Of a stretch of DNA of 64,000 bases, positions 1 to 41,023 are shown piece after piece (the first letter of the stretch is position 1; each line of letters starts with the position of its first letter). The stretch spans positions 2,170,001 to 2,234,000 of the forward strand of contig JBLDXI010000033.1 in assembly GCA_047495785.1 (NCBI GenBank), in the 5' to 3' direction. A program made the translations under genes and the position numbers. Source of the stretch: Lepidodermella squamata (lineage: Eukaryota > Animalia > Gastrotricha). The notes beneath the pieces are model-generated. The model ran no database searches, was not told the origin of the DNA, and was given only the letters and a program-made list of their open reading frames with translations.

Positions 1-1186
1 AATGGTCACATCTGCCTATCGATTCTCACTGAAGACTGGTCTCCAGCGCTCTCCGTCCAATCCATCTGCCTTTCAGTTATATCGATGCTCTCTTCTTGCA
101 AAGACAAGGTAACATTTCTGCTTACCAATATCTTGGAGTAAATTTGCGTTGGCATGAGCAGAAACGGCCTGTTGACGACGCATGGTATATTGCTGGCTGC
201 TCGAAAAATCCCAAGAACACTCGTTGGTGGTATCACGGTAAGCAGTCATTCATACAAGATCCATGATATTCATTTATTCTCTAATTTAGATGATACGGTC
301 TAAAGCTCTGCGGTCGGTGTCAATTATATCACTTTTATTATGCACTCTAGCGCTTTTCCGACGCGACATCCTAGCATGTGTCGGCATTTCTATTTTTGTT
401 TGCCATTTCAAAGTTTGCCCATGTGGTTTGGAATGTCGTGTTTTAATGAAATTTAAAGCCAGATAGTATCTCGAGTTGAAAACGAAGCTTCTTGGCTTCA
501 GTTTGTCAGAATTTGGCTCCCTCGAGATCAAATTTATTATCACCGTGAGCCACCAGCAATGTCTTTCTTTTAAACTCGTTTTATAATGAGTTGTATAACC
601 GCGATTTCGTGTGAAAATCTTTATTAGTCCGAGTATTTAGTACTGCTTGTAGGTTCAAAAAAGCCAAATGTTCTAATTCGTCGTGTGCAATCATTCCTGT
701 AAGTTCCTTATTCAGTTAAAATATGTAGCAGATTGTTGTTTCAAGCATATTACCTGACGCAATCGAAAGTTTTGGATGTTTCATCGCCGTTGACAGGTAG
801 AAAAAGATGATATATTATCTTTCTCAAAATGTTTTAACTATCTGGCGTCCTATCTCTTTTACTTTTTCACTTTGGTTCCGAGAAGTAGCGTGTCTGGAAT
901 CTGAACAAAAAACTAGTGAAACACCGAAAACAAAAATTTGTGAAAACGGTTCGTTGATTATCCTGGTGGTTGCATTTGAGCATATGTCTCTCCTGTTCAT
1001 ATTTCCTACAAGCCCTTTGTGCGTGTTTATTATATTGCAATTCTTACTATAATATTGATAATGAAAACGAAGTGTGGTTAATACAACTGTCGCAAAATTC
1101 TCTTGTCGGTTTTTATGGAATTGCGAATAGAAGAATACTCTTACAACGAATTATTTCTATTCAAATTTTAGATTTATTGTGCAAAA

Positions 1187-16865: not shown

Positions 16866-17522
16866 ACGCGAGAAAACTGAACGAAAATCGAAGCCAGCCA
16901 TGCAGGATAAGACATGACGAGGACGATTTTGTGATTAGTCTCAAATATATTTGATGATTATGCATGCAATTATCTGCCTATTTGTGGCTTGATCACTCTA
17001 TAAATCGCTTGCTTACGAATAAATTTAATGCTTCATGTTTGGTTAAAAATCTCGAAGTCAAACGCCGGAAAACGCTACAGAGCATCTAATAACAATATGA
17101 ACGCGCCAATCGACGAGGCTGAAATTTTGAAGGTCATTGAAGGCAGTAAAAACGTTGGCAAGCCTGGGGTAAAGACGCAATGTGTCGCCAAATTGGCGCT
17201 CCACTGAACAAAGACTGTTAGGTTTGAACCCTCCAGCATTTCCTTAATTTTGCAGCAGAATTTAGAGCAGAATTTTGTGAAAACCAGTTAGTTAGTCTTT
17301 AAAAATTACCTGGATATTTCTAGGCTTGATTACACATATTGGTGGCACATTTCGATATTATATTATTAATCGCTTGCTTGGGAGAGCAGCTTAAACAAAT
17401 TTCCATAACTTGTTCACAAATGGCGCGCGATTCTCGAGTCTTCGAGAGTCCAACTAGGTGTAGTTTCAGCGTCAGTATTTGTGCTTCCGAATTTTCTCAT
17501 ACTCTCTTTTTCAGGTTTGATA

Positions 17523-22889: not shown

Positions 22890-22972
22890 AGTATATTTAC
22901 CCTGACGAATAAAATTAATGGACGTTTTTTATCCCGTATTTTGTTTTAAACTTATTTTCAGCCTTTTGATCT

Positions 22973-24914: not shown

Positions 24915-27900
24915 CTATTTAGATGATGCGTCATTCGACGCTTCTGAGCCTTCGTCTTTCGTGGCGAGATTCAGGGGTCCAGTACTGCCCGAGCTGGCTT
25001 TCCGCGATGACGTCGATGACGAGCTTGCCGATGCCGGTTTAGTGACCGGTTTCGATAGATCCAACACGTCGTCAGCCTCAGCCGCCGCCGACGATTGGGC
25101 GGATGGCGGGCGTGGCGGGGGTGGAGCTGGGGCGGCTTGTTTCGGAGGTTTCGGAGCCGGGTTGGACGACGAGGCAGAAGACGGTGGGCGAGGTTTCGGA
25201 GGCGCTGGTGGTTCTGAAGCCGCGCCGCTGCCAGCTATAGCGGCCTGAAGCAGTTGCTCGGCTAGACCAGGCGGTAATCCGCCCAAGCCCCGAAGACCCT
25301 CGGCTAACGACGCAGCCGCTAGTTGCTGCTGAGCTTGCTGGGCCATTTGCTGCTGGGCCAACTGCTGTTGCAGCAGCATAGACGCAAGCATCAACGGATC
25401 GCCGAACATCATCGCCGATGGGTTGCCGAACAATTGGGAGAGCGTTTCGGCCGAAATACCAGGCGGCAGACCGGGCAGCCCACCTAACCCTCCCAGACCA
25501 GGTATAGCTGAGCCCAGTAAAGCAGCGGCCTGCAGCTGAGCGGCTGCTTGTTGTTGCGCCTGCTGCTGGGCGGCAGCGGCAGCCATCGCCGCGGCTTGCG
25601 CATTCGATGAGGCCTTGCTGCTACTACTGCCCGGATCTTTCTTCGACGAGGACGAAGCACCGCCGTGATGCTCTTTGTGTGGTTTTTCAGGTCGCTCTGA
25701 CTTTTCGTGTTTATCTTGTTTATCATGTTTATCATGCTTCTCGTGTTTCTCGTGCTTTTCGTGCTTTTCAGCCGATAGATCTTTCAACTCATGAGATGAA
25801 GATGAAGGCTTCATAGCACTGGTATCGACAATTCGAGGTTTTCGAGGTGGTTTCGGAACTTCTTTCGGAGCTTCTTTCGGGGTGGTCGATAGAGACCGCT
25901 CGGGTATACTTGACGAGGAGCTTTCGTCAACAGGCGGCGGAGGCGGTTTCTCGGTCGATTTCCGTTTTTTAGCCTCAGCTTTCGGCGGTTTTTCATCGCT
26001 GGGCTCAGGTGCCCCGGGTAACGACTGGGCGGCTTCGTCGGCCGGAGGCGGGGTAGCGGCCCTCGGTTCCTTCTTCGGATTTTTCGGCGGCCGGCCCTTT
26101 CTGCCGGGCACTTTCGCCGGGGTCGGTTTCGGGGTTGGTTCGGCGTCGAGCGAAGAATCATTACCGCCAAGACCGGACTGGTCAGCCTGGTGGGAGGTGT
26201 CCCGATCAGAGGCACCCGGGTTCGTCTCGTCATCCTCGGCCACGACCACCTTTTTCCGTTTTTTCGACGAAGACGTCGGGGCAGGGGGTTGCTTCCGCTT
26301 CTTCGGCGTTTTCTTCTCCCTCTTCGCAGATGACTCCGGGTCGTCTTCCGCCCCATTCGTAGCCCCATCACCCTCGCCGCCTTCCTCAGCGTTATCACCG
26401 CCCTCCTCGTCATCGCCAGTTGCGGATAACTTGGAATTTTCGTCATCGTCCTCGGCGCCTTCGCCCGATTTCGACTTTTTGCCCTTCTTCGGCGTTGCAT
26501 CCTGCGCTTTCCTCTTGCCCCGGCCGCGGCCAGATGGCGCCGCCGCAGCCTCTGCCTCTTCCTCCTCGTCCAAAATGTCGTTCAGCCACTGCTCGTCGCT
26601 CATAGAATCGATCGCATAATCAACCTGTTTCCGCTCACGAGCACCGCGACCACGCAATTGCTCCTCCAACTCTTGCTCCTCAACCACACGCTGCAAGTCC
26701 TCCTCGTCTCGCAACAGCCAGGCAGGCAATTCATTTTCTTGAATTAAACGCGACTTCCAACCGGACTGCATGTGCTCGCGGTTGATGCGTTCCATATCGA
26801 TTTTCTCGAAAATTTCCGCCTCATCCTCACTACGAGCCATCATTTCATTGATGGCCTTGTCGTCGGGGACCTCGAGATCTTCCTCCTCCTCCATATCGTC
26901 CTGTTGCAGCAGGAGTTGTAGAAAACGCTTCCGCTCGTTTGAGGTGGATTTCTGGTCAAACATGCCGGCTTGAATGACCTTTTCGTCGACGTTCAATTTG
27001 AAGCGCGCCGCGGCTAAAATTCGCTCTTCGACCGAATTCACGGTCATCAAACGCAAGACACGCACTTCATTGCGCTGGCCGATACGATGCGCACGATCTT
27101 GCGCCTGCAAATCTTGGTGCGGGTTCCAGTCAGAGTCGAAAATGATGACGGTGTCGGCAGATTGCAAATTCAAACCAAGACCGCCAGCTCGGGTCGATAG
27201 GATGAAGATGAAGTACTCCGCATTCGGGTCCTGAAATTGCTTCAGCAAGTCGCCTCGCTCCTCGGCCTTCGTAGTACCATCCAGGCGAAGGTACTTGTAA
27301 CCACGCCAATTGAAATAGTCCTCCAAAATCGACAAGGCAGAAGTCATCTATAAAATTAAAATTAAATTTTAATCGAAATTTTAGGAAAAATTTTGTTACC
27401 TGAGAGAAAAGCAAAACTCGATGTCCGGTTGCTCTGAGTTTTGGCAGGATACGATCGAGGAGTTCGAACTTGCCGGCAGCTCGGTACAGATCCGGCCCGG
27501 TAATCGACGTGTTCGGTTCTAGACCGATGTGCGCGGCGTAGGCCTGTTCGTAGTGGGGGAACATGAACGGGTGATTGCACACCTTTCGCAGCTGCATCAG
27601 CGTGTTCATTAGGGTGCGAGCGCCCTTCTTGTCCTTATCAGACACGTCCGTCAACATGATACCCTTCTGCATGTGGCGGTAGATGGCACGCTGCAGGCCG
27701 GACATTTCCACCTTAATGACATACTCGACCTTGTCGGGGAGTTGAGATTCGACCTCCTTTTTAAGGCGGCGGAGAAGGAAAGGACGAAGCACCTTGTGTA
27801 GACGTCGAATGATCAAAAGCGATTCTTCGCTGTTCAACTCGACTTTTTCGGTCGTGTTGGCGAATGGCGCGTTGAACCACTGTTCGAACGTAGTGCAAGA

Positions 27901-30016
27901 CTTAAAAATGTTGGGTAACATGAAATTGAGCAGCGCCCACAATTCGGGCAGTTTATTTTGCAGCGGCGTGCCGGTCAGCAGCAGACGATGCGGCGCCGTA
28001 TAGTACGTGTTCAAAATGATAGTCAGTTTGCAGTGGTGGTTCTTCATGCGGTGACCTTCGTCGATAATCAGGTACTTCCACTTGATTTTCGACAAAACGG
28101 CCTTGTCCTTGATGATGTACTCGTAGGTTGTTAGCAACACATTGAATCGCGCTGTTTTAATCTGAGAGGCAAGATTTCGACGCGATTGAGGAGAACCTTA
28201 AAAAAATGATAATTTAAGGAGGATTATATAAAAAAAATTTAATTTCACCTTTGTAGGTAATCACAGTAAGGCTTGGAACCCATTTTTCAAACTCATATTG
28301 CCAATTGGAAATTGTAGAAAGCGGTACGATGATCAAATGCGGCCCGTTCGACTTCTTCTTATCGGCCAAGTGAGCAATTAGACCGATAGTTTGGATAGTC
28401 TTGCCAAGACCCATCTCATCGGCCAGAATACCGTTCAAATTGTTGTTGAACAGCGAAACCAGCCATTCGATACCTTTGAGCTGGTACTTTTTCAACTCGC
28501 CGTTCACCATGTTCGACGGCTGCTTGTCAACCGGCTCGATAACGGAGTGGGCGATAGCGTAGTAATTATTGAATCCAGCTCCTCGTTTGTAGTCATCGTC
28601 TTCCTCAAGCCTGGCCTGCTCGATAATAGCTTTAGTTTGCTCGTCCTCGGGCAAATCAGAGGAGGTGCCCGCTGGTTTGGCGGAGGCTGCACTTATAGGC
28701 CGATCTTGGTTGTTCGTATTGTTGGTTTCGTCATCGCTCTCCTCGTCTCGAGGCTCAACTTCGAAGCCCTGGTGCATTTCGAGCCAAGTCTCGAGTTGCG
28801 ATTCAAGCGGCGCGTCTTTCCCGCTCAATCGCTCGCCCGTCTCCGGGTTGTGAACAGTGACTCGTCGCTCGCCATCTTCCGTGACCAGGTCCAATTTCTC
28901 GCGACGCCGTTTCGCCTTGTCAGAATCGATTTTCTTCTGAGTATCCACTTTATGCTGTTTGACCAGGTTGACCAAGTTTAAAATAAACTCATCGGTTTGT
29001 TTCAGCAAGAACGCAAGACGCTTGTCCTTCTTCTCGTCAATCATCTTACGATAACCGACTTCATCCTCAGCCATCAAACGGTTGATACGCTCCTTCTCGT
29101 TACGCTCGGCCTGTTTCTTCGCCTCGCGCTCGGTGTTGGCATGCCAGGCTAGAACGCTCTTGCCGACCTTGTTCAACGTAGCCCGAATGCCCTTGTGGTA
29201 CTCCTTGAACTCTTTGCCGTGTTGAATGACAGCGTTGATGTACTCGAGATGCTTTTGGCGTTTCTTCCGTTCCATCTCAATCTTCTGTTGCCGCTCCAGC
29301 TTCTCGGTAATTCGCGCCTCTCGCAACGTTTGCCGCTTCGGACGGCGGTAGTCTTTCATATTGAGCATCGTCTGAAGGGTGTTATCGCGCCGCATGAAGC
29401 CGAGAACTTCATTGCGAAGTGATCGCTGGAAATCAACGAGGCGCAGGGCCTTCAAAGTGATCGTCGCTTTGACTCGTAGGTCATCGCTACAGTTCAACGG
29501 CGTGGTTTCCAACTCACGAATGTGGTAAGACATGCGTTGCGCAACCCGGTTCTCGCGTTCGATCAACAACTGGATCGGGTCAACTCCGGGAGGTTTGGCG
29601 GCCGCGGCGGTTTTGCCAGGTCTCTGCTGCATTTGCAACATGGTCTGAACAGAAATTTGCGGCTGAGCCGGGACTACGGCGGTCTGTGGGGGTGGTCCGG
29701 CTGGAGCAGGGCTTGGCCCAGTCGACGCCAGTAAACCAGCTACCGTTGTGGTCTGGCCGGTCGTACTGAGAGACGCCCGGGTTCGGTCGACAGCAACGGC
29801 TAGAAATCCGTCGGGAACGGCCTGATTTCGCGACAACAGTCGGTAAGTGTTAATCTGAGCTCGCAGCTGAGCCATTTGGGCTTCCGAGAAAAGCCGCATA
29901 GCCGCGGCGTTACCACCAGGTGGTGGCGCCGGTCCGGGCGGGCGTTGGCCATAACCAGGCTCCATTTGAGAATTAGCCGACGGCTGGAGGTACGAAACAC
30001 TGCCAGCGCCGTCCAT
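24915..30016 (-). CDS. SMARCA4: SWI/SNF ATPase Brahma/SMARCA2-4 paralog B without bromodomain; introns 28197-28248 and 27348-27399
   Basis: QLQ ([12 protein letters not shown]), HSA, BRK ([12 protein letters not shown]...WLEMH), [13 protein letters not shown], HELICc ([11 protein letters not shown]), SnAC; long low-complexity tail. Symbol denotes the SMARCA2/4 family, not a specific vertebrate ortholog. Confidence 0.95.
25700..25770 (-). repeat. 9-nt tandem repeat encoding (K-H-E/D)n
   Basis: [23 protein letters not shown] in ORF 24915-27347. Confidence 0.8.
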
Positions 30017-30180
30017 TCAGATTTATAAAAAGCCTAAAATAAATGAAACACAAGTTAAACACCTTTAAAAATTCAATAATGAAAAAGACACCAGAGTTGA
30101 GGCTATCATCAAGCGAAAGAGTTGAAAGTAAAAATATATTCGTGTACAATAGAGCTGGATTATTATTATAATATTCGATA

Positions 30181-33100
30181 TCAGCCCTGAAATGATTGAG
30201 AATCTTCATAACCGACGATTTCTTCATATTCAACCGCATATCCACCGTACAAATCATCAGTCTCGTCTTGTTCTTGGTAAGGATCCTGATCCTGGTCTTG
30301 GTCCTGGTCTTGTTCAGACTCTTCCTCCTCCTCGGCGTAAGAGGTTGTCGATTCATTGTAACCGTAGCCGGACTGCTGGGAGTGATCGTCTTGCTCAAAA
30401 TTGCTAGTAGTAGGCTCTTCGATGTAGGCAGAACTCACGCCAGGTTCTTCAACTTTTTCCCGCTTTTTCCGCGGCTTTTTCGGTTTCTTAGGCTCACCAG
30501 GTTGGCCCGAAGCAGGTCGCTTCTTCCGACGACCGGTGTCCTCATCAAGCACTTCCCGCATCCATTGCTCTTCGGTTTGAGAGTCTTTACCATAGTCGAC
30601 TTGCTTACGTTCTCTTGCTCCTAAACAGAAAATCCAGCTTAATAATAGGAGGAACATTATTATTTAAAAAACTGACCTCGGCCGTAATAAAGGTCTTCAA
30701 GTTCTTTTTCCTCAGTAATACGACGGAGATCTTCTTCGTTTTTCAAAAGCCATTTCGGTAGTTCAGTTTCTTGGATGAGTCGCGACCGAAGACCAATCGC
30801 TTGGTCCCTCGCTTCACGCTCCATGTCCATTTTCTCGAAGAATTCCGCCTCATCTTCGCCACGAGCCATCATTTCATTTATCGCCTTATCATCAGGTACT
30901 TCAAGGTCTTCCTCCTCTTCCAAATCATCTTGCTGAAGAAGCAGTTGCAAAAAGCGTTTTCGTTCATTTGAGGTAGACTTTTGATCGAATTTTCCGGCCT
31001 GGATGACCTTTTCGTCGACGCTCAGCTTGAAACGAGCCGCGGCTAAAATACGCTCCTCGACCGAATTAGCGGTAACTAATCTCAGGACACGAACTTCGCT
31101 TTTCTGGCCAATACGATGAGCACGATCTTGCGCCTGCAGATCCTGATGAGGATTCCAGTCGGAGTCGAAGATAATGACAGTATCAGCGGATTGCAAATTC
31201 AACCCTAAACCTCCAGCTCGGGTCGACAGGATGAAAATGAAATAATCAGAGCCTGGCGCTTGAAATTTTCGCAGCAATTCGCCGCGGTCATCAGATTTTG
31301 TCGAGCCGTCAAGACGCAAATACTTGTACTGCTTCAACTGGAAATAGTCTTCCAAAATCGTCAAAGCAGACGTCATTTGCGAAAACATCAAGATTCGATG
31401 CCCTGTCGCTTTCAACTTCGGGAGAATGCGATCGAGAAGTTCGAACTTTCCGGAAGCTCTGAACAAATCGTTGCCAGTGATATGGGACTCCTTTGCCAGA
31501 CCGATATGGTCAGCGTAAGCGCGTTCAATTTGAGGGAACATGAACGGGTGATTGCAAATTTTTCGCAATTGCATCAATGTATTCATCAAAGTTTTGGTGC
31601 CACTGCCCTTTTCGGCCTTATCAGTATCGTTCGTCAACATAAAACCTTTCTGCATGTGGCCGTAGACAACACGCTGTAGACCGGACATTTCCACCTTAAT
31701 AACGTATTCAACTTTATCGGGAAGTTGCGATTCGACCTCCTTTTTAAGGCGGCGCAGAAGGAAAGGTCTCAGGACCTTGTGAAGTCGTCGAATGATCAAA
31801 ATCGACTCTTCGCTGTTTAATTCCACCTTTTCGCCCGTATTCGCGAAAGGAGCGTTGAACCACTGTTCGAATGTCGAGCATGACTTGAAAATATTCGGTA
31901 GCATGAAATTCAACAAAGCCCACAATTCCGGCAGCTTATTCTGAAGGGGTGTACCAGTTAGAAGCAGGCGATGAGGGGCTGAGTAGTACGTATTCAACAC
32001 CACTGTCAATTTGCAGTGATGATTCTTCATTCGATGACCCTCGTCAATTATCAAGTACTTCCATTTCGTCTTCGAAAGGATAGATTTGTCTTTTATGATG
32101 TACTCATAAGTGGTCAACAAAACATTGAAGCGGCCGGTTTTGATCTGATTGGCCAGGTTTTTACGATGCTGGGGCGAACCTTTGTACGTAATTACAGTCA
32201 AATTCGGCACCCATTTCTCGAACTCGTATTGCCAATTGGAGATCGTGGCGAGAGGCACAACAATAACATGAGGCCCGGTCGTTTTCTTCTTATCAGCCAG
32301 ATACGCGATCAAGCCAATTGTTTGAATTGTTTTACCGAGACCCATTTCGTCGGCCAAAATGCCGTTCAAATTGTTATTGTACAACGAAACGAGCCATTCG
32401 ATGCCTTTGAGCTGGTACTCCTTAAGCTCACCGTTAATCATATTCGACGGCTGCTTTGTGACAGGCTCCACAACTGAATGAGCGATGGCGTAGTAGTTTC
32501 CGCTGTCAGTACTGTTTCGTTGATATTCATCATCCTCTTCAGTCTTCGCCTTTTCGATAATCGCCTTGGCCTGATCGTCATCGGTCGGCTCAAGAGCCCG
32601 GTCAGTTTCACCGTCTTCATCACGAGGAGCGACCTCAAAACCTGAAGAAATGCAACATATAAAAAATGAAGAAAAATCCACCTTAACTAATTACCTGGAT
32701 GCATTTCTAGCCAGGATTCGAGCTGAGATTCTAGTGGAGCATCTTTTTGACTGATTCTTTCGCCCGTGACTGGATTGTGCAAAACAATTCTCCGCTCGCC
32801 GCCATCTTGATCAGCTTGCATGCGCCGTCTTTCACGTTCCTCCCGATCCAAAACAAGCCGCCTCTCAGCAGCATCTTCTTTGTGTTGCTTCACCAAATTG
32901 ACCAAATTTAAAATGAACTCATCAGTTTGCTTGAGAAGGAACGCCAGACGCTTGTCTTTTTTCTCATCAATCATCATTCGGTAGCCGGCTTCATCCTCGG
33001 CCATCAGGCGCTGGAGTCGCTCCCTTTCTATTTTCTCCTGCTGGCGTTTGAACTCCCTTTCGTTGTTCAAATGCCACGTCAAAACAGCTTTTCCTATCTT

Positions 33101-33880
33101 TGAGGTAGTCTGGTGAGCGGTTTTGTGAAACTCCCTGAATTCTTTCGCATGCTGAAGAACCGATGCGAGATACTCCGCGTTTTTCTGCTTCTTTTCTCGC
33201 TCCATAATCAATTTTTGCTGCCGTTGTTGCCTGAATAATTTCTGCTGCCGCTTCGATAAATTCGCAATATTAACATTGCTGTCACTGGGCTCGTTGAGCT
33301 TTTGCTTAATTATCGACGCAACGTCAGTTCTGACTGATTTCTGAAATTGCGACAATCGAAGAGCTCGCAGCGTGATTTGCGCTTTTAGCTTCGAGTCTTC
33401 ATCAGGTAAAAACTGCTGGTATTTGTCGACTTCCCGCGCGTGAAGAGCCATGCGAGTCGCGAGGCGGACATTTCTCTCCAAGACAACATGGGCTCGGTCG
33501 ATGGGTTGGGGTGGCACGGCCGGGGCAAGTTTACTTTGCCTGGCACTTTGGCGTTGGACTTGAATCGCTAACGACGGAGTTTCGACCGGGCTCGACCAGT
33601 CAGGCCGCGGGTCGAAAGTGAAGGACAGACTAGTTTTCTGGCATACTTTGCCTCGATTTAGCGCAACGGACAACAATCCTTCGGGAATGGTCAGTTTTTG
33701 AATAAACGCCCGATAGGCGTAGATTTGAGCCCTCAGTTGAGAAAACTGAGCCCCGGTAAAACGAACGGGTTCAGTCGGCGGATCGTAGGACGGGCATGAG
33801 CTCGAACGGTCGTACAGAGGAACCGGCTCTTCTTTGGTTTCGGAAAGTAGAGAACCCAAGAGGTCCTCATTTTCCAACAT
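30181..33880 (-). CDS. SMARCA4: SWI/SNF ATPase Brahma/SMARCA2-4 paralog A without bromodomain; introns 32642-32694 and 30621-30676
   Basis: QLQ, HSA, BRK, SNF2_N, HELICc and SnAC as in paralog B; ends in a short acidic Tyr-rich tail with a QD repeat. Family-level symbol. Confidence 0.95.
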
Positions 33881-34120
33881 TTTCAAACAATAAAACTCTA
33901 TTTGAATGATAAAATGACTTCCTTAGATTTTTACTCGCTTCTCCACATGCAGTGTGTTATTTTGTTTTCTTTTAATTCTTGAAGTATTCTCCGAGTTTAT
34001 AGAACCAAAATGTAGACTTTGGAATGATTTTGTCACGATCACCAGTTCAACCTGCTGAAGAAACAATGAAATGGTTCGGTTGGAAGTGACTCGCTGAAAA
34101 TTACATTCAAAGAGACTTTC

Positions 34121-35780
34121 TTAGTTGGAGCCCTGAGCACCATGGGTCAAAATGGTTGCAGCAGCGAAATTTCGCTGGACAACAGTGGCAGAGACACGGC
34201 TCGCCTCGGCAGCGGTGTGGCCGAGCTGCGAGGCTAGCAACAACGCTGGCAGCTGGTTGGTGGTCTGAGGCTGGCGAATGTTATGAGCAATTTCTTCCTC
34301 GGTAATCGGCACAGTCGGCTCGCCACGAGACGCCTTGCTGCGGTTCTCAGCCTCGCGGCGGGAAACGTATTGCTGGCGCATCTGCAGATAGCGCGCTTGC
34401 TGCACGCAGTTCTGAACCGAGCGACCAGCGTCAACGGCCAACTCTTCGGCACACAGCGCCAAATCACGCAGGTGGCGTTGCAGGGCAACGGTAGTTTGTT
34501 GTTGGCTGCAAAGACAAAGTAACCCATCTTAATTTCATCCTTCAAACCCCCGACTTTTTCGTAATTTGAGACACATCATTATGCTTATGCAATAAAGCGC
34601 AACCCTCAAAAACGCAATAAAATTGTGAAAATCCAATAAAACGCGTCAAGTACCTAGTAAGATTTTCCTTCTTCGCCGTTTTGAGTGCCTGGCACGAGCT
34701 TCGGACGTTGAAAGCGCCGAACTGATGCAACAGAATGTTCGAAAGATCCGAGTTGCGGACAGTAACCGGGAGCTGCTCGAAAATGTTCTCGAAGGTCAGG
34801 CCGTGCTGGCGCATCGTCTGCGGCGTGAAGACGTTGTTGTCGTAGAGCGCAACAGCGGCGTCGCTGAGGCGGTACGCACGAACCAGGCACGGCGGGGTGG
34901 TGAAAGCAGCGAGAACGTTCGACGGGTTCGCCTTCACCTTCGCCAGGTTATTCAGATCAATGACGAGTACGACGCTCTCGTCGTGCTGTTGCTGGTAGCC
35001 GAACTGGTGCTCGACGAACGCTTTCGTGGCGAAATTCGCAACGGAAGCGGTCGTGTACCAGCCGACAGCGACGTGGTCCTGGCGGAACATGCGCATCGTC
35101 GACAGCATGTCCATTTGATACCTGAAATTTTCATTTTTTTCAATCATGTCAGCAAATTTAACATCATAACATCTCGTAATTGAACAATTCATTTCATTAC
35201 GGTCCCCAGCTCTGCATCGAGTATATTAATGACTTTTGTGGAATAGCAGTCGAGCATACATAGTATGCAAATATTTAACAACAGATTTTCGCTTGCAACT
35301 AAACTAAACTAAAGGTACTGATGTTCAGGGTCGTTTTAATCTACCTCGCTAGAATATAGTACATTTTACACCCACTGAATAAAGATAACCTCATTATCTA
35401 GGGTGGATTGACAACAATTAGGCCAGTTTTATAACCTAGACATTTACATCAAGAAATTTACATATTGAATTTCGTGAATCATCTTTCATATCATTTCAAC
35501 GGCCTTACTTGTTTTCAATGTGTTCACGACGAGTCGCATCTTCAATGTGGTCAAGCGATGGAGACGAGAAGCAATTCGTCACCTCGAGGGTCGATCCAAC
35601 CAGTAGACCGACCAGCTTGCCCTCCGCACGCTGGTTCGTCTCTTCGGCGCTGCCGGATAGAAGAGACTCGGCGTGACGCAGCATTTTCATGAGGGTTACG
35701 CCCTCGAGTTGCACGGCTTCCGGTTTGGCGATCATGTGAACTGAGCCGCGATGCTGGCCTACAGGTTGCGCTTGCCTCAT
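34121..35780 (-). CDS. EIF3H: Translation initiation factor 3 subunit H (MPN domain), 3 exons
   Basis: VQLEGVTLMKMLRH, GKLVGL...LEVTNCF, YQMDML...DHVAVGWY, IFEQLPVTVRNS and C-terminal ENRSKASRGEP match eIF3h; introns about 35122-35507 and 34506-34653. Confidence 0.88.
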
Positions 35781-36390
35781 TTTAAAAATTATAACGATAA
35801 CGAAATCTAAAAATATCAAGGGATTAAATTGTATTAACAACACGTAATGGGCTTTTATTGAAATAATCAACCGTAAATAATATAAATTTGGCGGTGTATG
35901 GAAAAAAATCAAGGGAAGAAAAATCGAAAAACCGCTGTTGATCAATATCGTTACGAAAGACGATATAAAAATAATGATAATAATAATAATCGATGACTGG
36001 TTGATTGGAAAACGCGGGATGATGGAGGTACAAAATCTTTGATTACAGACAGGATTCACAACAGATTGCCACTGATTTTGAAGAAGAATAATAATAATAA
36101 GCAAAATCATATTGCGTCTAAGGCACCGCGATATCAATCGATTGGAGACCTGAATGTGGAAAACTTCGTTGTAACTAAAACGGTCCATGCACCATAAAAA
36201 TTTGTTAACAAATGGCCGTAAAAGCCAAGGCATGTGATAGTTCACAGCTAATCATACAACCTTAACACATGTGTGAAGCAGCAATGAAATGGTAACAGTA
36301 ATTCCTAAACGTGCCATTTGTTCACAACCGATCATACTAACGCTAACATATCGTAGTCAATTTCAAGTTCTCAACCGATTTTGAATCGAT

Positions 36391-37860
36391 TTAAATGCCC
36401 ATTTCGGTAAGGGAAGCATCGAATGCGGCTAAGACGTAGTCAGCATCGTGTTGATTGATACACATTGGCGGCTTGAAGCGCAGCGTGTTTCCGAATAGTC
36501 CGGATTTGCCGACGAGAACGTACTTCTCACGTAGTTTCTCCATCAGAAGGGCGGATTTTTCGCCAGCTAATGGCGTCCTCTTGACGGGGTCTTCAACCAA
36601 CTCTATGGCCAGCATTAAACCAAGGCCGCGAACGTCACCGATGGACGGATGCTTCTTCTGCATTTCGGCGACCTTCTTCATGATGTAGGTACCCATTTTC
36701 TTCGAGTTGGCTTGCAATTTCTCCTCCTCGATAACATCAAGAACAGCGCTGCCTACAGCCGAAGCCATAGCATTTCCACCGAAGGTGTTGAAATGCAAAG
36801 CATGCGTTAAAGGCTGTGCAATTTCCTTGGTGGTAACAACAGCAGCAAGAGGGAAGCCATTGCCGATACCCTTCGCCATTGTTACAATATCGGGGACAAC
36901 GCCGTGCGTTTCCCAGCCCCAGAAAGCTTCACCAGTACGGCCAAAACCAGTTTGTACTTCATCAGCAATGCAAAGACCACCACGGGCACGGACAAGCTTA
37001 TAAACCTGTTGCAGATAACCCTTCGGGAATTGGACTGTGCCACCGGCGCCCTGGATAGATTCCGCAATAAACGCTGCCATTTTACTCTTGTAGCAGGTTG
37101 AGCGCAATAGATCCTCAACTTCGTGCACGTAAGCATCGCAAGCTTTACATTGACCGGCAGCACAATCGCATTCGCGATTAGCTTGCACGGGAGAGTTGCG
37201 GCAGTTCTTACCGCCCCACGGGCCCTTGTAGACGTCTGGGCAGATGGCGTGATGATGACCGCCTGGCATGGGGATATTATGGCGCCAAGTCTGCATAGCA
37301 GCCAATGGCATAGTGCTTGGTGAAATGCCGTGATATGCATTGCGAAGAGATACAACATCCTGGCTTCCAGTGTTCAAACGAGCCATCAGCAGTGCCAAAT
37401 CGTTGGCCTCAGAACCGCTGTTAACAAGATAGACGTATTTGAGAGGCTCCGGGAATTTACCAGCAAGTTTTTCAACATAAGTCAATACAGATTCATAATT
37501 GTAAATTGTGGATGTGTGCCACAACTTCTTAGCTTGACCTTCCAAAGCAGCAAGAACTTTAGGGTGACAATGTCCAACGCTGATAGTCACAATTCCGCCC
37601 AAAAAATCTACATATCGCTGGCCCTTCTCGTCAAACAAATACTGCATGTGACCCTGGGTAACAGTCAATGGTGATTTGTAGTAGTGGAAAATACCAGGAT
37701 TGAGATGCTTCTTTCGAATTTCAGTCAACTTATCGGCCGATGGTCCAGTGTACTTGGGCGGCTTATAATCACATGGTGGTAAATCAGCCTGAGTGAAACT
37801 AGACGAGCTGCGGATGCCACCCGCAGACCGAACTTGACGTAATAACTGGCTACGCATCAT
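36391..37860 (-). CDS. AGXT2: Alanine-glyoxylate aminotransferase 2, mitochondrial (class III PLP enzyme), intronless
   Basis: Arg/Ser-rich transit peptide, GHMQYLFD, GIVTISVGHCHP, CPDVYKGPWGG, IADEVQTGFGRTG, PLP lysine in MAKGIGNGFP. Confidence 0.95.
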   Translation of the reverse strand: MMRSQLLRQVRSAGGIRSSSSFTQADLPPCDYKPPKYTGPSADKLTEIRKKHLNPGIFHYYKSPLTVTQGHMQYLFDEKGQRYVDFLGGIVTISVGHCHPKVLAALEGQAKKLWHTSTIYNYESVLTYVEKLAGKFPEPLKYVYLVNSGSEANDLALLMARLNTGSQDVVSLRNAYHGISPSTMPLAAMQTWRHNIPMPGGHHHAICPDVYKGPWGGKNCRNSPVQANRECDCAAGQCKACDAYVHEVEDLLRSTCYKSKMAAFIAESIQGAGGTVQFPKGYLQQVYKLVRARGGLCIADEVQTGFGRTGEAFWGWETHGVVPDIVTMAKGIGNGFPLAAVVTTKEIAQPLTHALHFNTFGGNAMASAVGSAVLDVIEEEKLQANSKKMGTYIMKKVAEMQKKHPSIGDVRGLGLMLAIELVEDPVKRTPLAGEKSALLMEKLREKYVLVGKSGLFGNTLRFKPPMCINQHDADYVLAAFDASLTEMGI

Positions 37861-39012
37861 TTTCAATTAAAACTCAGCAAACTCAAGTACAACGAAGTAC
37901 TGACCTATGAAAGATAAAAGAGGGTAAAGGGGGTTGAGGGTTGAATTAGGGCAAGTGTTTGGTGGTTAGTGCGACAAAATTACTTCTTAGTATGATACAA
38001 ATCACACGCTATGATCAATCTTCTATCTTCTATACATTCATTCTTTCATAAAAACGCAACTGGCCCTCTTTCTCAGAGCTAAATAACAACACTGAGGGCT
38101 GAGGGATCATTAAAATTTCACATGCTGAAGCCAATAGATAACGTCAATTTATGAAAAAAAACGACAGGATTGCAATTGACAGAAGTATACCAAATGCCTA
38201 GCCGGTTATCCACAGGACACAAGAAAGAATTCAAAGTTCGAGCTCATTCTCCATTTCTCCATTATCTGACGAAAACTAAAGCGAGATAAGCAGCGAAAAA
38301 CTGTGAACGACTATTCAAGGTCATAAAATAAAAAGAAATAAAGGGTTTCTGTCAATAATTATTTTAAAATCTACGACTTAATTTTATAAAATGAAAAGAA
38401 AACGGAGAAAAATGTGTTATTAGCCGCAGTTGAAATTACTTTTTTAACCTTGACTTTAATTTGTGTAGCCATCTGTCCGCGGTTTTCAGTTTTTGAAGCC
38501 TCAAACAGGTTGAGGGCGCTGCCTTTCAGTGCTTTCCGTTGACAGTTGAAAGAGAGGGCAGGCGGCTTTAGTTGGTCGTAGCAGTAGCCTAATGTTTTGT
38601 ATTGAATTTTGCTGCAATTATTATTCCAGCAAGTAATTATAGTTGACGTTAGCACCTTGTGTTACTGAGCCGACCGTTTATTGGAGTATTTTATTCATTA
38701 GCCACCTTCACCGTTTTAGCTTCACAGTAATATGTGAAGAAAAACAATGGGCTAGCTTCCTGATGGACTTACTAAAAACTGTTGTTGGAGTATCGGAGAA
38801 CGCCTCCAGAGATGTATCGCATTTTTTACTAAGTATCGAATTGAAAGTTTAACGACATGCATGATGCATGTAATGCTGCATATATATCATTTGCCGAAAT
38901 ATTTTGTTCTTCTTAATAACCAACTAATTGCCTTCCTCTTCCATGTCCGAGTTTTTGCTCTGACTCAATTCCGTAACCCAAGTTTTTATTCGGCCACTTT
39001 TTAGGGGAAGTC

Positions 39013-39606
39013 ATGGAGTTTACTCTCGCTATTGTGAAGCCAGACGCCTTTTGTCGTCCTATTGTTCTAAAAGTAACGGCTGTATTCAAACCAAAATGTT
39101 TACGTAATTCGGGGTATTCTATGCAGGCATTGTACGAAGTTCTGGCCCGAAAGTCAATCAGAGTCTGCATGGTGAAAGATATGGAAATGAGCATGAACTT
39201 GGCTAAGTCCTTCTATCAAGAACATGAAGGTACGACAAGAATTTAGCTGAATTTACTGATAAATCTTAGTTTTGCGCTAGGAAAATTTTACTACGATCGG
39301 TTAGTGTTTAATATTACCAGTGGCCCTTTGAGAGCGCACGTCTTGCAAGGTGCGAATGTTATTAAGCAGTGGCGTGTAGTAATTGGCCCCACTAAAGTCA
39401 ATAAGCTTCATTATGAACCATATGAAGATTCGCTTCGGGCTAACTTCGGCCTGAGTGACACAAGAAACTCATTTCACGGGTCTGATTCGCCGTCGTCTGC
39501 ATTACGTGAAAGCTCTCTCATTTTTCCAAGCTTTGACCTTGTGAAGCTTGACAACTGCCCAGACTTATTGCCCGGGCTAGTTGTTCAAAGTGCGGGTTGC
39601 TGTTAA
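39013..39606 (+). CDS. NME6: Nucleoside diphosphate kinase 6; introns 39073-39126 and 39230-39280
   Basis: TLAIVKPDA, FYQEHEGKFYYDRLV, SGP, GPTKV, FGLSDTRNSFHGSDS with the catalytic His. Confidence 0.88.
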
Positions 39607-39675
39607 AAAGATAATGTTTTTTTTATTCGTCTTGTTGCGTCTAGGTTTTTATTTTTAATATTGGTGTAAGTTATT

Positions 39676-41023
39676 ATGACATTGGAGTGCTCCGTTTGTT
39701 TCGAGCTTTCAGATGACAACTACAAATTGAAAACATGTGGCTGCGAGTTTTGTAAACGCTGCGTTCTGAGTTACATCGGAGTTCGTGTCCAATCCGGTGA
39801 CGTGCTAGACATACCATGCTTGTCTTCTCAATGTAAGCAGCCTTTCACACATGAAGAGGTCGACGAGCTTCTTCGAGAATCTTCATCTACCGATATCCAT
39901 GAGCGCTATTTGCGATACAAAGGCAATCGAGATGTAGAACGCGATCCAAATCGGACCTTTTGCCCTAATCCATTATGCTCATGTATATGCGAAATCCCAC
40001 CTAGCCCTGCGTCTAACACCCAAACCTCAGTAACGGTTGATCAGAGCACAAATCCAGATTCGAGCAGTAATAGCCAGCAACCGCCCGTGATAAATCCACC
40101 CTCATTTGCGAGTCCTCGCGCTGTGAAATGTCAAAATTGTGGCTTTCAATTCTGCTCGCTCTGTCACGCATCATGGCTACCTGACCAGGTTGGCCAGTTG
40201 AATAGCAATCAACCGGGGACAATCGACAGTCCGCAAGCTCATCACCCTTTCAGAACCCCATCTTCAACTGCAGCTGCGGCAGCTGCTGCCATTCCTATGG
40301 GCAATTTGTTATTCGGTGCCAATGAGCAATCGCAACAGACTCAAGCATCCCCACACCAATGTGAAGTAACCTACGTAGTAAATCGGCAAAGATGGAATCT
40401 GCTATCTAGGTAATTTTGCAATGCCAGATTTATCGATGTAGATTTTAATCTTTGTTTACTTCAGAATTGGCATAGAAGTAGCGGCTGATGACGTCATGAT
40501 AAAGCGGTGTCCGTGCTGCGGCATCCCGGTGGAGCGCGGACCCGGTTGCGCTCAGATGCTGTGCCTGAACTGCCATCATACGTTCTGCTGGTACTGCTTG
40601 ACCGTATTGGATGGCGACGTGTTTCTGCGGCACTACGAGTCAGGCGTGTGTCGCGCACGTCTCGGCCACACGCCCGGCGATCTGCGCCGCCACCGTGCCC
40701 GCGTCGCCATGGCTCTCACATGCTGCGGCGTCGTCGCCGTCCTCCTCCTACCTGTCATAATCGTCTGTTCACCGTGCATTCTCACCTGCGTCTGCTGCGT
40801 GCGCTCGCTCATAAACAACAGCGCAAGAGGCGCGGCCGGGGCCAATAACGCGAACGCTACGACGAATCGACGGCAGCAGTTCACAAATTTGGAAGGCATT
40901 GCAGCTCAACCGCCGCCTGACTATAGTCAAGTCGTTACTAACAGTAACAATCAGGGCAACCGCACTTCGTCGTCGAATTCCAACAATAACTTGAACATCC
41001 ACCAAAATAACTCGCCAGTGTGA
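39676..41023 (+). CDS. RNF144: RBR E3 ubiquitin ligase RNF144-like with a C-terminal TM helix; intron 40410-40464
   Basis: RING1, IBR and RING2 IKRCPCCGIPVERGPGCAQMLCLNCHHTFCWYCL followed by HYESGVCRARLGH and a Cys-rich TM, as in RNF144. Confidence 0.9.

Follow-up and report, generated by a model that had tools for sequence, protein, structure and literature searches.

Here, we provide transcript and comparative evidence that six neighbouring genes in a 64,000-nucleotide (nt) stretch of the genome of the gastrotrich Lepidodermella squamata (contig JBLDXI010000033.1, positions 2,170,001 to 2,234,000; hereafter the window, which means this whole stretch) probably form two divergent operons, AGXT2 > eIF3h > Brahma-A > Brahma-B and NME6 > RNF144, that are resolved by spliced leader (SL) trans-splicing. 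We put the probability of this reading at about 0.6. Polycistronic transcription resolved by SL trans-splicing had already been suggested in the initial annotation of this DNA. The RNA ends at the gene junctions, a nearly silent spacer between the two units and the conservation of the block in a related species (L002) fit that suggestion, whereas a common leader was not seen. From these observations we infer a common leader trans-spliced at the acceptors and one primary transcript across the cistrons of each unit.

Compact animal DNA with ~45% GC makes up the window, and its introns are mostly 44-70 nt long. Reading of the stop and start codons bore out the proposed layout. The gaps between coding sequences (CDSs) are exactly 610, 240 and 164 bp in the leftward run of AGXT2, eIF3h, Brahma-A and Brahma-B and exactly 69 bp in the rightward run of NME6 and RNF144, and the two runs diverge from one spacer with 1,152 bp between CDSs, the common region of ~1.15 kb described earlier. 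The gene names hold as well, as judged by Pfam and homology matches: AGXT2 has Aminotran_3, eIF3h has JAB and eIF3h_C, NME6 has NDK, the RNF144-like gene is of the RING-IBR type, and Brahma-A and Brahma-B are tandem genes that each carry QLQ-HSA-BRK-SNF2-Helicase_C-SnAC. The genes and the spacer, with the basis of each assignment (ORF, open reading frame; UTR, untranslated region), are:

24915..30016, minus strand: Brahma-B CDS (ORFs, Pfam, intron scan; orthologue in L002)
27348-27399 and 28197-28248, minus strand: predicted Brahma-B introns (intron scan)
30181..33880, minus strand: Brahma-A CDS (ORFs, Pfam; orthologue in L002)
30621-30676 and 32642-32694, minus strand: predicted Brahma-A introns
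33919..35806, minus strand: eIF3h mRNA with CDS 34121-35780 (spliced contigs of runs X1 and X3; Pfam)
35122-35508, 34506-34653 and, in the 3'UTR, 34055-34104, minus strand: eIF3h introns (spliced contigs of X1 and X3)
35879..37860, minus strand: AGXT2, with a single-exon CDS at 36391-37860 and a 3'UTR of at least 512 nt (X3 contig 15; homology)
37907..39002, no strand: divergent spacer, presumed shared promoter region (X1 depth)
39013..39606, plus strand: NME6 CDS with introns 39073-39126 and ~39230-39280 (GT..AG joints in X1 contigs; Pfam NDK)
39676..41023, plus strand: RNF144-like RING-IBR gene with a predicted intron at 40410-40464 (ORFs, intron scan, Pfam)

Three public sequencing runs match the window, and their contigs were aligned over 33760-39759. 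Spliced contigs and a poly(A) tail mark runs X1 and X3 as RNA, while run X2 is DNA that differs from the window by ~1% and probably represents the other haplotype. All three are seen as assembled contigs, in which a contig over two genes does not prove one transcript. The 3' end features of eIF3h and AGXT2 are:

33919..33921, minus strand: eIF3h cleavage and poly(A) site (X3 contig 13, with 22 non-templated T before 33919, which is an A tail on the gene strand)
35854..35859, minus strand: AATAAA close to where the AGXT2 3'UTR ends, 47 nt 5' of the eIF3h acceptor

An AGTAAA at 33930-33935 stands 10-12 nt before the eIF3h poly(A) site, which itself lies ~21 nt 5' of the acceptor G of Brahma-A (33898). 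As the Brahma-A ATG is at 33880, only ~40 nt therefore separate the end of one mRNA from the next start codon. X3 contig 15 runs unbroken over 35879-37810, so that the 610-bp "gap" between AGXT2 and eIF3h is AGXT2 3'UTR, and AGXT2 RNA reaches within 72 nt of the eIF3h acceptor. The spacing is operon-like both in the CDS gaps of 240, 164 and 69 bp and in the 610-bp gap, where at most 72 nt lie between RNA ends. At the 5' end of eIF3h, X3 contig 14 aligns to exactly 35807, the predicted acceptor, and then carries 3 non-genomic letters; the eIF3h RNA thus departs from the genome sequence at this AG. A hexamer resembling a polyadenylation signal (PAS) ends 32-51 nt before the acceptor at six of the nine same-strand junctions in the window and in L002, against a background of 7.9% (binomial P = 1.7e-5, for a distance range picked after inspection of the data). 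The divergent spacer is nearly devoid of RNA, with an X1 depth of 0-4 over 37960-38959 as compared to hundreds to thousands in the flanking genes, and such a silent spacer is consistent with a promoter spacer. Both NME6 introns were confirmed by RNA. Contig depth was also considered as a measure of expression, and was rejected as unfit for ranking genes.

The same RNA data bear on the possibility that the acceptors belong to ordinary cis-spliced introns in 5'UTRs, with non-coding first exons upstream, a start site for each gene and no common leader at this locus. An upstream cis exon could equally well have supplied, as its end, the 3 non-genomic letters seen at 35807. However, among the joints listed for the X1 and X3 contigs, which cover eIF3h deeply, no cis joint leads onto 35807, 33898, 37905, 39004 or 39644. 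The eIF3h contig stops 3 nt beyond the acceptor and does not continue into a unique exon, and a first exon of Brahma-A would need to sit within eIF3h. We therefore consider cis-spliced 5'UTR introns improbable.

Some features of the RNA contigs stand apart from these questions. The 3'UTR intron of eIF3h is 50 nt long, is RNA-confirmed and begins 17 nt past the stop codon; its acceptors differ by 3 nt between X1 and X3 (34052-34104), at the tandem acceptor ttcttcagcag. The AGXT2 3'UTR (35879-36390), with at least 512 nt, is unusually long for this compact genome, contains an (ATT)n run at 35961-35996 and could hold an internal promoter or other element. The indels listed for X2 include a 28-bp deletion, a 7-bp insertion, a 7-bp deletion and a 4-bp insertion, and all listed indels (34561, 35394, 38857, 38880) are intronic or intergenic. 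Run X1 is labelled as another organism than X2 and X3 and yet matches the window at 99% or more; either one species bears two labels, or the culture was mixed. X1 contigs carry the SMART primer AAGCAGTGGTATCAACGCAGAGT internally at 37866, 35904 and 39593. These primer junctions were evaluated as cDNA ends and rejected, as their orientation is wrong, and are regarded as library artefacts.

Acceptors in front of start codons were predicted for nine genes in the initial annotation, and an AG was found within 1 nt of each predicted place, 8-44 nt 5' of the ATG, in all nine (acceptor G at 1171, 17514, 22961, 30034, 33898, 35807, 37905, 39004 and 39644). Their strength was scored with a matrix built from 27 cis-intron acceptors of the window, five of them RNA-confirmed and the others from short GT..AG introns that join ORFs, and the best site in the 50 nt 5' of each ATG was compared with 32,220 non-coding control windows. 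The sites, with those of the six block genes first, are:

30034..30035, minus strand: Brahma-B acceptor, strong, tttcatttattttag followed by g (score 11.9, P 0.004; sequence only), 17 nt 5' of the ATG and 147 nt past the Brahma-A stop
33898..33899, minus strand: Brahma-A candidate acceptor, cattcaaatag followed by a, weak on sequence, 17 nt 5' of the ATG
35807..35808, minus strand: eIF3h acceptor, gatatttttag followed by a (score 11.5, P 0.006; X3 contig 14), 26 nt 5' of the ATG
37905..37906, minus strand: AGXT2 candidate acceptor, weak, tatctttcatag followed by g (score 3.9, P 0.27)
39003..39004, plus strand: NME6 candidate acceptor, ccactttttag followed by g (score 4.5, P 0.24), 8 nt 5' of the ATG
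39643..39644, plus strand: RNF144 candidate acceptor, gttgcgtctag followed by g (score 2.3, P 0.40), 38 nt past the NME6 stop and 31 nt 5' of the ATG
22960..22961, plus strand: pLGIC3 acceptor, strong (score 12.0)
1170..1171, plus strand: acceptor of EBP2, a gene identified by Pfam Ebp2 (score 8.2, P 0.06), 15 nt 5' of the ATG
17513..17514, plus strand: acceptor of the gene named F-box in the initial annotation (score 9.6, P 0.02), 8 nt 5' of the ATG

In terms of sequence strength, the prediction stood for five of the nine sites (pLGIC3 12.0, Brahma-B 11.9, eIF3h 11.5, F-box 9.6 and EBP2 8.2; background P 0.004-0.06); the other four, the acceptors of Brahma-A, AGXT2, NME6 and RNF144, are at chance level (P 0.24-0.46). 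Taken together, the nine sites rise above chance (Fisher P = 1.8e-5; P = 6e-4 in a Mann-Whitney comparison with ATG controls). The stretches between acceptor and start codon, 177 nt in total, contain no ATG where 2.8 are expected, a weak and partly circular comparison; the downstream gene would have a short 5'UTR with its start codon as the first AUG. Among the other ORF starts scored, including Ank, pLGIC1 and pLGIC2, whose true starts are unverified, none has a strong acceptor. Because of these, the description of trans-splicing signs as window-wide was an overstatement. The spacer between pLGIC2 and pLGIC3 (22890-22972, 83 nt) is built like the operon junctions, with an AATAAA that ends 48 nt before the acceptor and with the acceptor 11 nt 5' of the ATG.

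The four weak sites could be chance AGs in AT-rich DNA, in front of mRNAs that start unspliced near the ATG. Apart from their background P values, a simple estimate predicts some YAG in ~75% of 44-nt stretches, and the X1 contigs of AGXT2 end at 37866 and not at 37905. On the other hand, the equivalents of all four sites in L002 are strong acceptors, and the nine-site set as a whole is above chance. Chance acceptors at these four genes thus appear very improbable.

The relatives in question came from searches with AGXT2, whose best matches are environmental or Logan sequences with 78% (L001), 74% (L002) and 66% (L003) identity, whereas AGXT2 of named animals, mostly spiralians, reaches 58% identity at most. 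An exact look-up of the AGXT2 protein gave no record, and protein searches returned no match above 80% identity from L. squamata itself. L002, which is represented in several ENA metagenome assemblies, has the same six genes in the order RNF144 < NME6 and, diverging from these, AGXT2 > eIF3h > Brahma-A > Brahma-B, with gaps of 44, 1413, 535, 180 and 131 bp from one end of the block to the other. Between the window and L002 coding DNA alone can be aligned; the divergent spacer and the other non-coding DNA cannot. Strong acceptors precede all six orthologous ATGs in L002, with scores of 6.8-12.8, including those of the four genes whose sites are weak in the window. The Brahma-B acceptor ttttattttgtag is at the equivalent place, as is a strong Brahma-A acceptor (score 10.4); the NME6 acceptor is tttttcgttcag (score 6.8), and that of RNF144 lies ~22 nt past the NME6 stop. 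Past Brahma-B, L002 has PAN/IgGFc-binding, lectin, zinc-finger, GT6 and GBP genes where the window has the pLGIC trio. Synteny ends at the block edge, as seen on the one visible side and in one relative species. The cluster is thus kept beyond the surrounding synteny at that one boundary and in that one relative, and the linkage of AGXT2 is missing in L003.

Further details of L002 concern individual genes. A candidate intron of 39 nt (L002 7352-7390), 21 nt past the stop, occupies the position of the eIF3h 3'UTR intron. The distance from the AGXT2 stop to the next acceptor (L002 5603-6119) is 517 nt, near the length in the window, with sequences that cannot be aligned. Both Brahma paralogues are present (L002 7511-15892), with ~75% DNA identity between the copies over the helicase core, and the Brahma duplication is therefore older than the species split. 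In the window, the tail of Brahma-B, which is of low complexity (24918-27347, minus strand, residues 532-623), has a sub-threshold match to Pfam Diphtheria_T, with 21.6 bits against a cut-off of 27. We regard this match as a composition artefact. Searches with eIF3h for a second relative transcript returned only genomic pieces, a contig cut at its 5' end or distant eukaryotes (up to 49% identity).

Several observations weigh against SL-resolved operons at this locus. None of the six genes shows a leader sequence in the assembled RNA contigs, all but five of whose loose ends were listed. The search for a shared leader at the AG sites that the initial annotation had called for yielded only the 3 non-genomic letters at 35807. 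It had likewise called for an SL RNA gene, and an Rfam scan of the window had zero hits (a tRNA scan of the window also found nothing). Since X1-X3 all consist of assembled contigs, absence is not demonstrable from them. A match between an RNA 5' end and an acceptor is found for eIF3h alone; the acceptors of Brahma-A, Brahma-B, AGXT2, NME6 and RNF144 are predictions, four of them at chance level, and the RNA contigs shown for AGXT2 reach no further than 37866, short of the candidate at 37905. The AGXT2 transcript of L001, a Logan RNA contig, has a 5'UTR of 43 nt, the 5' part of which was found neither in the window (allowing up to 3 mismatches) nor in JGI contigs. In L003 the neighbours of AGXT2 differ, and no acceptor immediately precedes the AGXT2 ATG; on one side (L003 1-6146) is a tubulin-tyrosine-ligase-like gene, on the other a 7TM receptor gene in convergent orientation. 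It follows that either the AGXT2 linkage is not ancient or the L003 gene is not an orthologue; L003 may reflect a young linkage or another lineage that lacks the feature. Lastly, the AGXT2-eIF3h spacer of ~550 nt provides room for an internal promoter.

Alternatively, the genes could be trans-spliced without being co-transcribed, each from its own promoter in the 3' region of the upstream gene (outrons or "hybrid operons"), with their close packing reflecting a compact genome. A spacer of ~550 nt between AGXT2 and eIF3h, long enough for a promoter and an especially plausible place for one, is present in both species, AGXT2 stands apart from eIF3h in L003, no polycistronic RNA was seen in the assembled contigs, and many of the trans-spliced genes of flatworms are not part of operons (PMC12582326). 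However, only ~40 nt separate the Brahma-A ATG from the eIF3h poly(A) site, and the NME6 stop is at most 38 nt from the RNF144 acceptor, or ~22 nt in L002. In addition, the six-gene block was retained in L002 while its flank and all non-coding sequence diverged. Separate promoters are, in our assessment, rather unlikely.

We propose that the two putative SL-resolved operons function as follows. Both units would share one promoter spacer of ~1.1 kb, and transcription of each would yield a long precursor. Cleavage and polyadenylation of the upstream cistron would then occur at the PAS-like hexamer, and the AG acceptor, ~20-35 nt further downstream, would receive a capped spliced leader from a separate SL RNA. 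It is somewhat probable that these are true SL-resolved gastrotrich operons of an unusually tight kind, in which the PAS hexamer stands ~30-50 nt, and cleavage occurs ~20 nt, before the trans-splice acceptor.

The resolution of operons by SL trans-splicing is a textbook mechanism, described in worms and flatworms. Among animal phyla, both SL trans-splicing and operons have a scattered distribution, and it is debated whether they had one or many origins. The locus described here contributes architecture and conservation, not a new principle. Our literature search found no paper that connects trans-splicing or spliced leaders with Gastrotricha or Lepidodermella, and the L. squamata genome paper mentions neither trans-splicing nor operons (PMC11660948). 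If true, our reading would be part of the first evidence that the phylum Gastrotricha has operons and SL trans-splicing. Common ancestry with the flatworm trait, as opposed to an independent origin, would become testable, because flatworms, the sister phylum of gastrotrichs proposed in PMC6468455, have both operons and SL. With ~21 nt from poly(A) site to acceptor and the conservation of the block in another species, the locus is a well-defined place to test for operons in Gastrotricha. There is also a consequence for annotation, as genes of this kind will be fused or given wrong starts by gene finders.

The closest comparison is with the SL operons of flatworms (Macrostomum lignano, Schistosoma and cestodes), which likewise consist of unrelated same-strand genes and have an acceptor just 5' of the downstream ATG. 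Flatworm operon candidates are defined as same-strand genes no more than 300 bp apart, genes that are not in operons use the SL as well, and conservation between species is seen for some operons (PMC12582326). The spacing at our locus falls inside this 300-bp limit (PMC12582326). In contrast to flatworm operons, one CDS gap here is 610 bp and is short only if the 3'UTR is counted, and leader and SL RNA are inferred.

In Caenorhabditis elegans operons, trans-splicing of a gene is coupled to 3' end formation of the gene upstream of it, first genes also have an acceptor (outron), and the acceptor consensus is T-rich, of the TTTTAG/TTTCAG type (PMC12582326). The arrangement proposed here is similar to operons of the C. 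elegans SL2 type in all these respects: coupled 3' end formation and trans-splicing, an acceptor on first genes and T-rich acceptors. The intercistronic region in C. elegans is ~100 nt long, with a U-rich element and a dedicated SL2, whereas the one measured spacing here is ~21 nt and the distance from hexamer to acceptor is 32-51 nt. By its spacing, the locus does not belong to the SL2 subtype, with its intercistronic region of ~100 nt and U-rich element, and it may nonetheless work like such an operon. In the operons of tunicates (Ciona, Oikopleura) and the "SL1-type" operons of C. elegans, there is almost no intercistronic spacer and the poly(A) site adjoins the next acceptor. It is this type, found in tunicates as an unrelated lineage, that the spacing of eIF3h > Brahma-A and NME6 > RNF144 resembles.

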